From positions 2,418,001 to 2,482,000 of the forward strand of contig CDRNST010000056.1 of the NCBI GenBank assembly GCA_977016875.1: 64,000 bases of DNA, given 5' to 3'. This DNA is from Pavona decussata. Lineage: Eukaryota. Shown piece by piece: positions 3,033 to 30,080 of the stretch. A program made the position numbers and the translations under genes. The notes under the pieces are model-generated. The model saw nothing but the letters and a program-made list of their open reading frames with translations. It was not told the DNA's origin and ran no database searches. Every line of letters begins with the position of its first letter. Positions within the stretch are counted from its first letter, which is position 1.

Positions 3033-4153
3033 ATTAACAATTATTCACCGAAGTGGAGGTGAATAGTGGTGGATATCTACCGAAATAAATACAGTTGAAC
3101 CTCTCCACAACGGCCACAATGGGGACAGAAGAAAGTGGCCGTTGTGGAGAGGTGGCCGTTATGGGGAGGTAGGGGTGTAATATGACACCTTTTTTTTCGT
3201 GGTTATTGTGCCAAGTTCATGCTTACTATAGCCTATAATGGCAATCCAATCTTAAATAATATATACAGATAAAATACACAATAAAACGTAAATAATGTTT
3301 CGAATCAAAATTCGACAAAATGTTAACAAGAAGAAACGAGCAAGGTTCGCAACATTCGCTGTATTATTGTACACAATTTATGCTTACTGCAGGACATAAA
3401 TGGAACACAATCAAAATACGTATATCATTAAAATGGATATAGAAACGTAATGTTCCGAAGACAAATGTCGATCACTGCATCAACTTATAAAAAAGGTTTT
3501 TACAAAAAAGAGCTGTACTGGCCGTTGTCGAAAGGTTATTTTGGCAGTTGGGACGCACTTTAGTGGCCGTTGCCGTTGTAGAGAGGTTTAAACAAGAGGT
3601 AATGTATGGACTGTCCGCTGGGACAAAAAAAAGTGGCCGTTGTAGAGAGGTGGCCGTTGTGGAGAGGTGGCCGTTAGTGGAGGTTCGACTGTACCACACA
3701 AGCTGAATAACTAGCGGGCCAAAATTCCTTTATTTTTGACACTGTACCGACAAATGGTGGGAAATTTTAAAACCACGCGCGCCGCGCGGTAAGCGATTTC
3801 TTGTTGTAGAAAGTTCCGTCTCGCTTTTTTGCAAACAATTAAAACTTTTTGAGACACTTATTTAGTTGCTAAGGTATCATTTCTTTAACTGTTGTGTGAA
3901 ATTCGTCTTGATTTCGAAACCATGCTCCTAAACATTAGATGTTTCATTGTCTACATTGAAATTATAGTGCTCGGCAGTTTTCGTAAACAAGGCATTGTAG
4001 TTTCATTTTTTGCCTTAGAATATGAGGTTGGAAAATTAAATAACTTACCATTTAATACCTTCAAACTAAACTTTGTTGCCATTTTTGTATTTTTCGTAAC
4101 AGCTGCATCGTTTATCTAAAAAAATTCCTTCTCTTCGGTTGCTCGGAGGTGAG

Positions 4154-23882: not shown

Positions 23883-25190
23883 TTAGGGAGAAGAAGGCGG
23901 GTTGAAATGGCTGCAAATGAACTCGCCAAATTGCCCTTCATTAGTAGACCAAAAAGTTAGAGTCGCATCAGAACATTGGACGGAATGCTTGCCTTGAGTA
24001 CCATACCAAGATGGTGGACCGGAAATGCGAGCCTCAAGGCAGTACACTCCGCCTTTCCTTAAAAGTATCGGTTCCTTAAACAGTACATCAAAACCGTGAT
24101 ACTTCCCCGAAGTGTGCGGGACAGATAAAAATGTTCCTTCCCTGGAAGTAAGAACAGTTCCAATTAAGTCATTTTTTAACGTAAAAGAAATTGAATAATC
24201 ATTGTCCTTGCTACCAAAGACGTACACTCCATGAAAACGTAGATCAGTATTTCGGCTCAGGGAAAATGGTAAACTGCAGCTTTTTCCATTATTTATCCAG
24301 CCAAACTTCACTAAGCTAAACCTGGAACAGCGTCTCCGAAGACCAACTCTTTTGGTCTTTGGAAATCCCACTGGAAAATTTTGCACAGAATTGAGATCTC
24401 TCTTGTAGAACACTTCGCTGACCTTGAGTATATTACTTTTAAAGAGAACGACAGAGCTAAATTCGTCCTGGGTCATAAGGGGAAAACGTATTGCTTTTAC
24501 GATCCGCTCTCCTAAAATGGTTCTCATTTGCTGTCCGTCTGCCACGATGCCTTGTCTTTGTGATTGTTTTGTTGCCCACCTGATGACTCCTTTGAACAAT
24601 TCTACTTCGGCAATACTCAGGGTATCTCTTTGAACCAGCGCTTCAAGTAAGGACCTCTCGATTGTCACAAATGTATCTGATTTCAACGCCGCTTCTGTAT
24701 GGTCGTCGATCATTTCCCAGCATCGATCCACAAGACTTTTTTCCTCATATTTTTCAACCGCTGGGAGAATGCTGAAAACATTTGATGGATCTAAATTCTC
24801 TTGTAAATATATCGTACATTTCTCAGCGAGTGAAGGCACCATGTATTTCTTAGCCAAGTACAACACTCGCATCACATTACTTCCGCTTAAATTCACTTCA
24901 TCGCTGTACATGTAACGAAACAATTCCAACAGACTCTCGTACTCACAGTCAGGCAGTTCAATAGAGTCTCTAGTCTCCGCTAGCTCACCGTAAAACATGC
25001 CTTCGAACACTGGACTGCCAATCGACAGCACAAACTTGTGAGCGGGAATCACTTGCCTACTTTCGCTTTCACCATCGCTCTGACGAACCACAAACTTCAC
25101 ATCGCTGAAGAGATCGTTTTTGAGCATAAATGTCGTTCTTTCTTTGATGTTGAGTCTAGTTGTTTGCCAGTCTTTTTGTAACACAGACAT
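23883..25190 (-). CDS. BTB-BACK-PHR protein (BTBD1/2/3/6-like), intact, intronless, 435 aa
   Basis: Complete BTB, BACK and PHR motifs as in the paralogues. Confidence 0.95.
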   Translation of the reverse strand: MSVLQKDWQTTRLNIKERTTFMLKNDLFSDVKFVVRQSDGESESRQVIPAHKFVLSIGSPVFEGMFYGELAETRDSIELPDCEYESLLELFRYMYSDEVNLSGSNVMRVLYLAKKYMVPSLAEKCTIYLQENLDPSNVFSILPAVEKYEEKSLVDRCWEMIDDHTEAALKSDTFVTIERSLLEALVQRDTLSIAEVELFKGVIRWATKQSQRQGIVADGQQMRTILGERIVKAIRFPLMTQDEFSSVVLFKSNILKVSEVFYKRDLNSVQNFPVGFPKTKRVGLRRRCSRFSLVKFGWINNGKSCSLPFSLSRNTDLRFHGVYVFGSKDNDYSISFTLKNDLIGTVLTSREGTFLSVPHTSGKYHGFDVLFKEPILLRKGGVYCLEARISGPPSWYGTQGKHSVQCSDATLTFWSTNEGQFGEFICSHFNPPSSP

Positions 25191-25441
25191 GGTGTCTTCA
25201 CGATGCGGTAAGCTCAGTGAAAATTGAAGCTACGTTTACCAATTAACAAGGCAGAACAACACGGAAAGACGGAAAATTTTACATATTAAAGGAGAACTGA
25301 AGGCTATAAGACAGATTTTTTTGTATCCACAGATTATGGCCGATTATTATAGATACAACTATAATAAAAGGTAAACAATCGAAAAAACTGAGAATTTCGA
25401 TGCGAGAATAGCATAAAACGAAGGGAATTCCTCAGATTTGA

Positions 25442-25525
25442 ACGTCCGCCATTTTGTACAGATTCTCTTCCGGTTACTTCCAAAAAAGGAATGCGCGTTG
25501 TCGCGTTATGACGTCACTGCGCTCA
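25442..25525 (+). promoter_or_regulatory. Subterminal YY1-like and CRE-like motifs, mirrored at 29468-29530
   Basis: ACGTCCGCCATTTTG (25442) pairs with CAAGATGGCGGACGT (29516). ATGACGTCACTGCGCTCA (25508) pairs with TGAGCGCAGTGACGTCAT (29468), a perfect 18-bp inverted match. Confidence 0.55.
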
Positions 25526-25667
25526 TGTGTTGTTGTTGCACCCAGACATTGCAAAGGTTTTGTTAGGGCTTTGTGCCGAGAGAATTTCGTGTCGTTTGTA
25601 TTCCAGGATATTTTCGCGAATACAGTTGAAGGGACCGTGTATTTTAGCGAACGAAAGCGAAATTTTG

Positions 25668-26841
25668 ATGGCGGCGGCTGAGATTGAACCATATTCTTTT
25701 GAACCCATGCGAGACCACTCGGATTCCGACGAAGATTTCACTGAAAATGCGGACGAAATAAGACGAGGAAACACTCTGTGGTGTAATTGTGGACGTTGCG
25801 AAAACTGGGAAAATCAGCAAGAAAGAGAGTGCCAATGTTGCCAGGAGATTGAAGAAGCTGTAACGAAAATATCAGGTGAAATCATTTATGTACAAAAAAT
25901 GCGAATAAATTTTTTTGTTGATATTTGTATCAATCGTCTTATTTCTTTTATCAAGCTTAATATGTTCCGAATTGTACAATTATTGGTGTTTACCAGTGCT
26001 GCAATACATTGTTTTGGTTATTTGGATCAGATATGGAGACAGATCTTCATCCCCTTCGTTGTATTACCGAGCATCCTAGTTTCAATACAATATGCTTGCA
26101 AAGAGAAGTGCTGGAGACTGCCATTGTTGGCTTGAGCCAGACGCGCGGGACAAGAGCACCACGAGAAATGAATTATATGTAGGTATCCTGTCTGCCGGTA
26201 CACCTGTTACTGTTTGTTTTAGTTTGCGGGTTCTGAGAAGAGTCATAATCTTGCTAATATCAAGCTCATAACAGTAGAACTGGAAGCCATTTAATTATAA
26301 ACATTGAATGCGTGACCTTACAGTTAAATATTACCAACAGTTCGCATTATCGTTGGCCGAACATATCAACCAGAATCTCCTAATCAGAACTTACAAACGT
26401 GCCACAAGTTTATCCTTAAAACAGTTTACACAGCGCCTAACTCAGTGATCTTTGCAATCAAAGGCAGCCGCAAGGTAGTGCCATGATTTCAATAACAGAC
26501 TGAACTGCTTGTCAACAAGTTACACTACAAGCATACCTCCTAAAGTTTGTTGTGATGTTACTCAAAATTGATCGGGAGAGTTGATGCCACCGACCCCTAA
26601 TACGTAAAATGATGTGTAGATATTTCTTCTTTACAGAAATTATCGTTATGCCGCATATCGCCAATTTACTTGGTGGATACATAACAGACTGGGGAGGTAT
26701 GTCAGAAAGGTAATTCCTGCATGCGTTGTAAAGGATATACGAGAAGCCTATCCTGATGCAGACGGAAATTACACTGGATTTCGTACACCTGACGAAAGTT
26801 ATTCCGAAGTGGACTTATCCTGGATACAGGAAATTGTATGA
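25668..26841 (+). CDS. Kolobok accessory (KolX-type) protein, P2X7 C-terminal 'ballast'-like Zn-binding domain; exons 25668-25875, 26031-26178, 26637-26841 (186 aa)
   Basis: GT-AG introns in compatible phases give ...PYSFEP...WCNCGRC...ECQCCQE...RCITEHPSF..ICL.REVL...YRYAAYRQFTWWIH..LG...RKVIPACVV..IREAYP...GNYTGF. AATAAA follows the stop. Confidence 0.88.
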
Positions 26842-26861
26842 AAGGAGCAATAAAACTTTGT

Positions 26862-29429
26862 TCAGTTTGTTACATTATTTGTATTAAAGCGAGATCTGTG
26901 TCTCTCTAGCAAGTTCTCTTTGGGTGGTCTTGCTGTAGGAGCAATGTTTGCTGCAGCAGGCTTAGCGGGAAGGGGAGGCACTTCAATTTGACCTCTCTTA
27001 AATGCAAGGAGATCAGCCATGAGATCATGCAAAAACTGGTAAGACTTATCCTTGTACTGAGGCTTTGCAACCCAGCCAGGACTTCCCTTGGGATGGACAA
27101 ATTTGTGTTTTGCCACACCCTCTTTGGTCATGGCTTGGGTACGTCCCACATTATGATTGTGGTCAAGAATAGCAAGTTGAGTGCGTGCTCTCATGCCATG
27201 ATAAGAGTAATGATGCAACTTATGACAGTATTTCTTTGCCATTAGACCGTGATACATCTCCAAGATGCCTGTGTGGATAAATTCTGCAAGCATCGCTATA
27301 TCCTTTAAAAGAGACTTGTTCCAAGCAACCTCCTTCAGAGCATCATGGGCGGGGCTTCCAACTTTTAGCCACTGCTTCCTTCTCTCGGTTTCTTGTGGGA
27401 TGGGTGGGTGGGCACACCGATGGAAATGCTGACAACCCTCCCAGTGGTGTATGTTTGCCGTGTGATAAACTATAGATTTCCATCTTTCCACACACTCAGT
27501 ACCATTGCCTTGTGAAGTCTTTGCACACCACCAGAGGTGAGTTATGATGGCATGAATCCATGGTTTGAGAGCAGCGCATGGCTTTGCCTGGGCCTTTTTG
27601 CTCAATTTTTTTTTTACCGATTTAGCCATGTGCCAAACATCAAAGTTGTGCTTGATGTTTGGTCGTTCCTTTTTCAAGTGTGCTCTTACTTGGATATGCC
27701 TATCTGTTGCAAGTTTTGCAATGGCCACATTTTCTTCTTGTAAGTGGTCCAAGCAACGCTTCAGTCCTTCCAATTCCATCCCGTTTGAGTTTTTAACCTC
27801 TGTCACTTGAACTAATGAAAAATCTAGAACCTTTGATGACTCTGTGTCCACTATACTGTAAGTCCCGTATTTCGCCGAGTGTCCTGGACTATCACAGCGA
27901 CCATCGCCTCCTGCCACAACCTCCTTGTTCCTAACTTCGCTTAACGTTTGCGCTTGATGTTCAGTGTACATTTTGTCAACAATTGGGAACAGATAGCTTG
28001 TCTGAGTTTCGTTGTAACTTCTTTCACTGAAAAATTGCATGTTTGTTGCTTTTGCAACACTGGCAACACTGCCGTAAGAATTTCCAGTGAACAGTATTCC
28101 AGCGCTAAGCAATAAATTTCCCGCTGCCATTGAACTAACAAACGGTTGTGTTTGCCACCGCAATGGCTTTTCGCAGCATCCAAGATTTTCTATTGTGGCT
28201 AAGGACCCTTTACTTTTAAGTGTTAGGTTTTTTACATTGCGTCCGCAGTTTGGACATTTGACACATTGAGAGAAAAGCTCTTTTAATTTACTCTCAAACA
28301 CTAAGAACTTTCGCTCTTCGTGGACATCACCGCAGTTGTCGTCAAGCCAGTTGTTGGACTCCCTTTCTTCCTCGTCATCGTCAACTTCACTTTTTTTAAA
28401 CAATTTAGTATCCTCGGAGTTGTCTTCAAGGTCAGAATTTTCTTCACCAAAATCGCTGTCGACGTCGCTTAATTCGGACTCATCAGAATCGGACATTTCC
28501 GTCAGCCATTCATCTTCACTTTGCTCCTCTTTGAAACTGACTGCTATTTCAGAAAAATCTAATTTTCTTACTGACTGTTTAGGTTGGCAAATAACATCTT
28601 CATTAGGGAATGAATCCTTGGACGATGCATAGCTGTGGTCATTTGATACAGCGTGGCGGAGGTCAGCTAAGGAAATCGATTTAATTTTCTGAGGGGAGTT
28701 TTGGGTATGTGGCATGTCTGTCTGGCATGCTTGATCCACCATCGTAACTTCGGTTTGGCTATAACAGTCATTAACCAAACATTTCGAAGAGGCTTGTATT
28801 TTTCTCTTTTTTCTTGGCGGTTTTTGCGTTTTGACGGATGTACATATGTGCGACGTCGCAGCTGATGTCACGAAATCTCCGTCTGGTTTCTGTGCGGCTT
28901 CTGAATTTGCATTACTGCTCTCCAAAATTTGATTTATAGTCTGTACGATTTAAAAACAAATGAAGAATTAAAGACCATTTGCCAATAACATTGAAACTTA
29001 TTTAAACGAAAGGCGATTTTATTGGTAGATTATAGTAAATACACAGTTGTTCGAGGTTTTCTATATATAGCATGAAACGCGACTTACTTCTTCATGAAAC
29101 GCTTTCCGTTTTCGGCGCTCACTGGCAGGCCTTCGGGTTGATCTCCTCTTATGTGCGAACAAGGTTGGAATCGCATCATCTTTTAAGTTGCGTTTTCTAC
29201 CACTCTCAGGCATGAGTTTCGACCGTAAGTCTTCTTCGAAACACGAAGACTCAAAATGCGCTGAACATATGTGGCTATGTGCCAGTGGCGGCATATTTTT
29301 TCTCTTGATTTGGGCCAGCCATTCACTCAGTCGGGTTTCATCTTTTAAGGGAAATCGATGGAAACTTATTCCTTTCTTAGTATCTCTGGGAGACCTATGT
29401 GAACAATTTACAACAACGCAATGAACCAT
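26862..29429 (-). CDS. THAP-domain Kolobok DDE transposase; exons 29429-29088 and 28940-26862 (806 aa)
   Basis: THAP (CVVVNC..FHRFP..W..ICSAHF..AIPTLF) is spliced in phase 0 (GAA|GTAAGT, CAG|ACT) to an ORF with CxxC, GDGRCDSPGHSAKY, LATDRH, FDVWHMAK and HTGILEMYHG. Confidence 0.9.
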
Positions 29430-29719
29430 TTCGGATCTCTGTTATTGAAATTTGGCGCGTTCACGACTGAGCGCAGTGACGTCATGCTTGGTACCCACGC
29501 CTTCAAGATGGCGGACAAGATGGCGGACGTACATGGTGTAGTTTTACGGGCCTTTTTTTCTTGTAAAACATGCTTGAAATGGGAAGAAAAATAAAAATAC
29601 TGCAACATTTACTCAAGGACTATTGTTTTCTTTGTTTTGAATTTCTTAAAAAAAATGAGATTTTCACCTTCAGTTCTCCTTTAAGTCACGCTTCTCAAAT
29701 GAACTCGACATCTATCATC

Positions 29720-30080
29720 AACCATCTAATTAACAAATCGGCGGCAGTTTTCTATGGTCTATACTCTTACAGACCATAAAATGACGTCAAAAAATGTTCA
29801 AAACTCAAGTGGAACCACGAGCCGCAGGCGAGTGGTTTCACTGCCAAGTTTTGGACATTTTATGGCGTCATGTCATGGTCTATAAGAGTATAGACCATGG
29901 AAAACTGCCGTCGATTTGTTTTTTACAATAACATGGAAAAAGTACGAGCGGAAGTGACTATTTTTTTTCCTTGAGAAAGCGCGCGCGTTACGTCTGACGT
30001 CGTTTCTATTATCTGTGCTCTTATAGACAATAGCTACGAGCCAATCAGCGCGCGGAAATTTGGACAGTTATTGGTAAAAC
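29720..30080. repeat. Palindromic non-autonomous repeat inserted after the duplication
   Basis: ~90-bp arms aacaaatcg.cggcagtttt.atggtctatactctta / taagagtatagaccatggaaaactgccgtcgatttgtt. Absent from the paralogous region at ~22365-22400. Confidence 0.6.

Follow-up and report, generated by a model that had tools for sequence, protein, structure and literature searches.

Kolobok DNA transposons are recognised by TTAA target-site duplications, 5'-RR..YY-3' termini, a C/DxxH signature in the transposase and a zinc motif that precedes its last E, according to Kojima & Bao 2022 (Mobile DNA 13:24, PMC9587614). In that paper the second protein of the Kol0 lineage, KolX, is reported to match the cytoplasmic ballast domain of the P2X7 receptor, in which two zinc ions are held by seven Cys residues. 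The same source identifies free-standing ballast proteins of animals as parts of Kolobok elements, derives P2X7 from the fusion of a P2X4-like gene with KolX, regards nanor as probably a domesticated KolX, and includes the cnidarian family Kolobok-1_NV in its Figure S6. Ballast-only proteins had been described in corals by Rump et al. 2020 (PMC7016195). A full-text literature search for 'KolX' returned no biological paper later than Kojima & Bao 2022. The present analysis concerns a stretch of 64,000 nucleotides from the coral Pavona decussata (the window; GenBank assembly GCA_977016875.1, contig CDRNST010000056.1, positions 2,418,001 to 2,482,000 of the forward strand). Positions 25290-29680 of the window form a 4,391-bp element that is an intact, recently active and autonomous cut-and-paste DNA transposon of the Kol0 lineage of Kolobok, and its accessory gene encodes a KolX protein which, as judged from a predicted structure, has the fold of the P2X7 cytoplasmic ballast. 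We put the probability that both the element and its KolX protein are correctly identified at about 0.93.

A prediction made earlier from the sequence alone (the original prediction) had stated that Kolobok elements encode a second protein, KolX, that its homology to the P2X7 ballast might already have been reported, and that such transposons could be the source of the domain captured by P2X7. The first statement agrees with the published account, the homology was indeed in print, and the proposed source is correct but dates from 2022 (PMC9587614). The element described here is thus a clean coral example of a relationship, including the origin of P2X7 and nanor, that has been known since that year.

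The ends of the element are defined by perfect 14-bp terminal inverted repeats (TIRs), AGGAGAACTGAAGG on the left (25290-25303, plus strand), which gives the 5'-AG (RR) terminus, and CCTTCAGTTCTCCT on the right (29667-29680, minus strand), which ends in CT-3' (YY). TTAA stands directly outside both, as target-site duplications at 25286-25289 and 29681-29684. The window contains exactly two occurrences of the 18-mer made up of TTAA and the TIR, where 0.12 would be expected by chance, and the TIR is conserved in two diverged relatives, L002 and L003. A second copy, L001, was located on another contig by way of a database entry identical to the open reading frame (ORF) of the window transposase. 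It is 99.86% identical to the window over 4,400 bp, with six mismatches and no gaps; the match spans exactly 25286-29685, with TTAA on both sides and unrelated flanking sequence beyond. Logan contigs of this organism likewise have precise breakpoints at 25286 and 29684/29686, beyond which they carry other flanks, and copies of the element that are 90-95% alike are present in coral metatranscriptome runs. An empty-site joint (25285 to 29685) was not seen in the run contigs. The intact Kolobok transposon of the original prediction is borne out by the TIRs, the duplications and the near-identical second copy.

Copies of the element vary. At position 26174 the window has T, giving Tyr in the linker of KolX, whereas L001 and all four runs have A, giving Asn; the T is a private substitution of the window copy. 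In-frame deletions of 51 and 195 nucleotides are found in transposase variants from coral metatranscriptome runs and relatives, in the acidic N-terminal part of the protein. A contig from a related coral transcriptome (run X5) joins 26419 to 28745 with six extra letters between them, and represents an internally deleted, non-autonomous derivative whose deletion extends from intron 2 of KolX into the transposase gene.

The transposase is encoded on the minus strand. Its first exon (29088-29429, with the ATG at 29429) specifies 114 amino acids and contains a THAP zinc-finger DNA-binding domain, recognised by Pfam with an E-value of 6.7e-21. The second (26862-28940) carries, by comparison with homologues and an AlphaFold2 (AF2) model, an acidic, disordered N-terminal region, a CxxC zinc motif and an RNase H-like DDE core. 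An open frame of 687 amino acids extends over 26862-28925 with the THAP exon upstream, and the two-exon model gives a protein of 806 residues. Its 147-nt intron (29087-28941) is a prediction read from consensus splice sites, the donor being GAA|GTAAGT and the acceptor GTACAG|; the residues just upstream of the TTG at the start of the ORF align in L002.

Pfam gave no meaningful match to the 687-residue ORF, and distant homologues gave only sub-threshold matches to Mutator, MULE and ISL3 families; the identity of the transposase therefore rests on its motifs, on the published alignment and on its fold. There are 469 homologues at E≤1e-10, the closest named ones coming from Acropora and Oculina. 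The core of exon 2 contains the motifs GDGRCDSPGHSAKY, ATDRH, DVWH, HLWWC and HTGILEMYH. Among 40 aligned homologues, D341 and D345 (in GDGRCDSPGH), D408 (in ATDRH) and E556 (in HTGxLExYH) are invariant, and either D341 or D345 is a candidate catalytic residue. The DxxH signature corresponds with DVWH at 429-432, in which W431 is invariant and D429 and H432 nearly so. It is followed by the zinc motif, consisting of HLWWC (463-467), H488, H493, C504 and H506; these positions, the WW of HLWWC included, are invariant or nearly so, C467 being the one exception, absent from the list of conserved columns. The blocks and their order match those of Kolobok-1_XT1p and Kolobok-1_BF1p in Data S5 of Kojima & Bao (PMC9587614), compared by eye.

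In the AF2 model of the transposase the core has a predicted local distance difference test score (pLDDT) mostly above 85 from residue 190 onwards, and the N-terminal 185 residues are disordered. Its best matches in the PDB are ISCth4 (IS256/Mutator-like), Hermes, the P element transposase and retroviral integrases. The locus thus shows TTAA duplications, RR..YY termini, a transposase of the RNase H-fold DDD/E type, and the DxxH signature with a zinc motif downstream. We conclude from these motifs that the transposase is of Kolobok type, its placement in the Kol0 lineage resting on the motifs together with the presence of KolX.

The KolX gene lies on the plus strand and comprises three exons. 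Exon 1 (25668-25875) encodes a PYxFEP motif, an acidic stretch and the zinc cysteines of WCxCGxC and CC; exon 2 (26031-26178) encodes the RCIT cysteine, an HPxF helix region and a linker; exon 3 (26637-26841, with the stop codon TGA at 26839-26841) encodes the stretch RYAAYRQF...VIPAC..IREAYP..YTGF, equivalent to residues 546-595 of rat P2X7. The donors are AG|GTGAAA and AT|GTAGGT, both acceptors end in CAG, and the frame is continuous, giving a protein of 186 amino acids. Its stop codon faces that of the transposase (26862-26864) tail-to-tail across a gap of 20 bp. Frame, splice sites and stops all fit the three-exon gene and the convergent arrangement that had been proposed.

Both introns of KolX are found as exact joints in the contigs of run X3, from the same organism. 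One contig carries a GT..AG joint, 25875|26031, that skips 155 nt (listed as 25870 to 26026, with the cut five places to the right), and one other contig carries the second GT..AG joint, 26178|26637, that skips 458 nt. The depth is low, but two exact matches to splice sites predicted beforehand are hard to explain except by splicing.

The sequence AATAAA at 26851-26856 on the plus strand, inside the 20-bp gap and just before the transposase stop, is the likely polyadenylation signal of KolX. The KolX stop, this signal and the transposase stop all fall within 26 bp (26839-26864), and no AATAAA is read on the minus strand soon after the transposase stop. Since the signal sits in the gap and the minus strand has none nearby, the 3' ends of the KolX and transposase mRNAs probably overlap; convergent mRNAs that overlap could yield double-stranded RNA.

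Evidence for the ballast identity of KolX comes from several directions. Its exons were searched one by one, with Pfam and phmmer run on separate exons. Exon 3 matches the Pfam family P2RX7_C (PF20478) with an E-value of 4e-10 and 40.4 bits, against a cutoff of 23.5, and aligns with residues 546-601 of rat P2X7. Exon 1 matches the same family weakly (E 0.023, 15 bits), on the corresponding earlier part of the profile; a phmmer search of the PDB sequences with exon 1 gave no relevant match. The motifs WCNCGRC, ECQCC, RCIT, IPAC, YRYAAY, IREAYP and YTGF, cited by the original prediction as equivalents of the P2X7 cysteines and nucleotide-site region, can all be read in the exons of the window. 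All seven Cys residues of the zinc cluster are kept, three in WCNCGRC, two in CC and one each in RCIT and IPAC, and each of the seven columns is at least 97% Cys among 68 KolX relatives. The cluster is a predicted dinuclear zinc site.

For comparison we used P0125, a spliced homologue from NCBI annotated as a 177-residue 'P2X purinoceptor 7-like' protein from Acropora muricata, which is 72, 63 and 78% identical to KolX exons 1, 2 and 3, respectively. Its annotation omits about 14 linker residues; full-length relatives have this linker at the end of exon 2, and because they keep it the splice model of the window is favoured over the P0125 annotation. A phmmer search with P0125 against 1.84 billion cluster representatives gave 1,675 relatives at E≤0.001. 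When a profile of the 68 KolX relatives was searched against the PDB, P2X7 was the only protein matched (E 3e-22, residues 469-596).

Structural superpositions give the same answer. The AF2 model of P0125 has a pLDDT of 80.8 and a predicted template-modelling score (pTM) of 0.71. In a Foldseek search with this homologue model P2X7 structures fill the first 14 places, and the match after them has an E-value above 4. VIA-align superimposes the model on P2X7 with Z-scores of 9.4-10.2 and root mean square deviations of 2.9-4.0 Å over 106-114 residues; the alignments extend from model residues 25-33 to 162 and from P2X7 chain residues 414-472 to 595. We conclude from the modelled homologue that KolX has the P2X7 cytoplasmic-ballast fold, and the ballast-like character claimed for the accessory gene is upheld by the Pfam match, the profile match in the PDB, the fold comparison and the KolX alignment together.

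The KolX family also has features of its own. An N-terminal PYxFEP motif (positions 6-11 of P0125; P11 is present in 60 of 68 relatives) belongs to a disordered, acidic tail, and an Arg in an LGxxxRR stretch (position 133 of P0125) is near-invariant, being found in 66 of 68. Both the tail and this Arg are absent from P2X7, and no mention of the PYxFEP motif or the LGxxxRR Arg was found in the available sections of Kojima & Bao 2022 and Rump et al. 2020.

Selection on the two genes was estimated by comparison with L002, a family with about 75% DNA identity to the window element, the same TIR and the same exon layout. The ratio of non-synonymous to synonymous substitution rates (dN/dS), rough at this distance, is 0.106 for KolX and 0.035 for its exon 3 alone, compared with 0.149 for the transposase. 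From these sequence comparisons, purifying selection appears to act on KolX no less strongly than on the transposase, and the low dN/dS of KolX indicates that it has been maintained by selection within the transposon lineage. KolX is also partly kept in a family of 60-70% identity; in the L003 copy no match to KolX exon 3 was found.

These comparisons bear on a quite different explanation, in which the three-exon gene would be a captured host gene, or a chance frame, carried as a passenger in the element. Domesticated relatives of the domain do exist in nanor and P2X7. The gene nevertheless lies inside the TIRs in both near-identical copies, its exon structure is kept in the family of about 75% identity with a dN/dS of 0.106 and in part in that of 60-70% identity, and KolX, in the published account (PMC9587614), defines the Kol0 lineage from sponges to vertebrates. 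We regard a passenger as very improbable, and its position in both copies, its conserved exon structure and its dN/dS led us to set this explanation aside.

The original prediction further proposed that the transposon carries a guanine-nucleotide-sensing cofactor. Rat P2X7 contacts GDP through R546, H547, R574, R578 and K583 (Rump et al. 2020, PMC7016195), and the isolated ballast domain of human P2X7 binds GDP with a dissociation constant of 2.6 uM (PMC9574498). In the window KolX the corresponding residues are R, Y, V, R and D, so that the rat-type set of contacts is not present in the window protein and two of the five residues are retained. Among the 68 relatives the two contact arginines are found in 68 and 64, respectively, and the other three positions vary. 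The residue equivalent to H547 is Tyr in 27, His in 13 and Leu in 12, and that equivalent to K583 is usually Glu, Ser or Asp. Rump et al. 2020 already report that outside the deuterostomes only R546 and R578 are conserved, and pose the question of GDP binding there. The motif resemblance that underlay the proposal holds; what it claimed beyond that resemblance does not follow from the contact residues. On this comparison of residues, binding of GDP or GTP by KolX is doubtful, although a different arrangement of residues could conceivably hold the nucleotide, and a phosphate-binding pocket of some kind is plausible.

A more specific proposal, built on analogy, is that KolX could be a guanine-nucleotide- or nucleic-acid-binding subunit needed in trans by the THAP-DDE transposase; in its strictest form KolX would be a guanine-nucleotide-binding cofactor and the Kolobok transposase would depend on GTP or GDP as that of the P element does. 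The P2X7 ballast itself binds GDP (PMC9574498), and the 68 KolX-like proteins show almost no variation at the positions of R546 and R578 or in the AY, IR..FP and Y.GF motifs. The P element transposase is the one transposase known to need a GTP cofactor for transposition (PMC7776569). The C/DxxH signature, moreover, is common to the Kolobok, P, hAT and MuDR superfamilies (PMC9587614). The substitutions of H547 by Tyr, R574 by Val and K583 by Asp nevertheless remove three of the five contacts, the same loss is recorded in the ballast domains of non-deuterostomes (PMC7016195), and the GTP-binding domain of the P element has a different fold. We consider the broader and the strict form alike to be unlikely, and to connect KolX with the use of nucleotides by Kolobok on the strength of the P element parallel would be speculation. 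If the proposal were true, Kolobok would have a split version of the P element's dependence on a nucleotide cofactor, and P2X7 would have inherited the ligand pocket of a transposition cofactor.

A working model for the element can nonetheless be outlined. The THAP domain would bind the ends of the element, and the DDE core would cut at TTAA and rejoin there. KolX would act as a transposon-encoded accessory subunit needed for propagation, a zinc-stabilised domain with a conserved basic pocket that would bind a phosphate-bearing ligand. This pocket may comprise the equivalents of rat R546 and R578 together with the family-specific Arg of LGxxxRR, and might accept either a guanine nucleotide or nucleic acid. 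The disordered PYxFEP/acidic tail at the N-terminus may dock on the transposase or on a host factor. We lean towards the view that KolX is required for transposition.

Another possibility, which we take seriously while giving it somewhat less than an even chance, is that KolX is a nucleotide-independent zinc-cluster adaptor or regulator that would bind the transposase, the element ends or host chromatin and either assemble or restrain the transpososome. What is strictly conserved in the family is the seven Cys residues and the hydrophobic core positions, not the full GDP site, the conserved disordered PYxFEP and acidic tail resembles a docking motif, and a role in the regulation of transcription has been suggested for the KolX-like protein nanor (Rump et al. 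2020, PMC7016195). The presence of two invariant arginines and of a third, family-specific one in 66 of 68 relatives, on the other hand, suggests a phosphate-binding site, as in the accessory-subunit model outlined above.

Several points weigh against the interpretation of the locus given here. The fold was tested on a stand-in for the spliced protein of the window, the homologue P0125, with its per-exon identity of 63-78%. Each KolX intron is represented by one low-depth contig in a single run, the label of run X3 as RNA is a guess, and contigs in which the KolX introns are not spliced coexist with the joints. For the transposase intron no RNA joint was found in the run contigs, which cross it unspliced. 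With dS between the elements at 0.85-1.2, synonymous change is nearly saturated, which makes the dN/dS values rough. Of the five residues through which rat P2X7 contacts GDP, the window protein retains only two, with an acidic residue (Asp) in place of K583.

Each end of the element also carries a subterminal module, placed immediately 5' of whichever gene begins there. The left module (25444-25525, plus strand, 5' of the KolX ATG) consists of the YY1-box-like sequence GTCCGCCATTTTG at 25444-25456 and of ATGACGTCACTGCGCTCA at 25508-25525, which contains TGACGTCA, similar to a cAMP response element (CRE). The right module (29468-29533, minus strand, 5' of the transposase ATG) has the same 18-mer with TGACGTCA at 29468-29485 and two GTCCGCCATCTTG boxes at 29504-29533. 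The two modules are in inverted orientation, with a GCCATnTTG box about 160 bp and the TGACGTCA 18-mer about 220 bp in from each end. The order of TIR, GCCAT box and TGACGTCA is conserved in L002 and L003 (60-75% identical), where sequence comparison places the modules at 3376/3416 and 7454/7522 (L002) and at 3437/3477 and 7278 (L003). The twin modules are most simply, and probably, promoters of the two convergent genes or binding sites for the THAP domain of the transposase.

The surroundings of these elements show further features. An inverted repeat resembling a miniature inverted-repeat transposable element lies 43 bp to the right of the window element (29727-29925); its 79-nt arms are 87% complementary, its loop is 41 nt long, and it contains TGACGTCA. 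To the left, at 23883-25190 on the minus strand, is an intact gene for a 435-residue BTB-BACK-PHR protein, and the Kolobok insertion stands 96 bp upstream of its ATG, in what is likely to be its promoter or 5' untranslated region. In each of the four runs, contig depth across 25000-25157 is very high. At the L003 locus, a reverse-transcriptase ORF (RVT_1) at 1840-2997 adjoins the diverged Kolobok copy.

The practical value of the locus is that it offers an apparently intact family with two near-identical copies and a transcribed and spliced KolX gene under purifying selection. It is a good natural template for asking how a transposon makes use of a ballast domain, and whether guanine nucleotides are bound by that domain, and the answer would bear on the role of the ballast domain in P2X7.

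Among other transposons, the Drosophila P element transposase and THAP9 share with the window transposase an N-terminal THAP domain, an RNase H DDE core with an insertion domain, and the C/DxxH superfamily signature. In the P element the GTP-binding insertion domain positions the transposon end. The P element differs in its 8-bp target-site duplications and in carrying its own GTP-binding domain within the transposase, with a fold unrelated to KolX. The piggyBac elements share the TTAA duplication, and a C-terminal fragment resembling KolX occurs in a few of their families (PMC9587614). Their termini, however, are of the CCC..GGG type and their transposase belongs to another family, whereas the window element has AG..CT termini and a Kolobok-type transposase; these two features rule out a piggyBac reading of the TTAA, and no piggyBac match was found by Pfam in the window element.

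KolX and the P2X7 ballast (PDB 6U9V/6U9W; PF20478) have in common the fold (Z about 10), the seven Cys residues, arginines corresponding to R546 and R578, and the AY, IR..FP and Y.GF motifs. In contrast to that domain, KolX is free-standing, with no ion-channel fusion, lacks the H547, R574 and K583 contacts, and has in addition the PYxFEP/acidic tail and the extra LGxxxRR Arg. The invertebrate ZCD/ballast proteins and zebrafish nanor (PMC7016195; PANTHER PTHR36981), which occur in cnidarians including corals, are likewise short ballast-only proteins with the Cys residues and the equivalents of R546 and R578. Rump et al. treated them as host genes, whereas KolX in this coral is clearly part of a mobile element, a situation to which Kojima & Bao subsequently drew attention for such proteins.

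The closest relatives remain families of the Kol0 (Kolobok0) lineage such as Kolobok-1_XT, Kolobok-1_NV and Kolobok-1_CTe (Kapitonov & Jurka; Kojima & Bao 2022, PMC9587614), which have in common with the window element the TTAA duplications, the RR..YY termini, a DDE transposase with DxxH and the zinc motif, and KolX itself. Motif for motif, the window KolX can be aligned with the sequences in Figure S6 of Kojima & Bao, and the transposase with those in Data S5. Beside these named families, the element described here is distinguished by its coral host, its length of about 4.4 kb, its convergent genes and the twin GCCATnTTG/TGACGTCA module.

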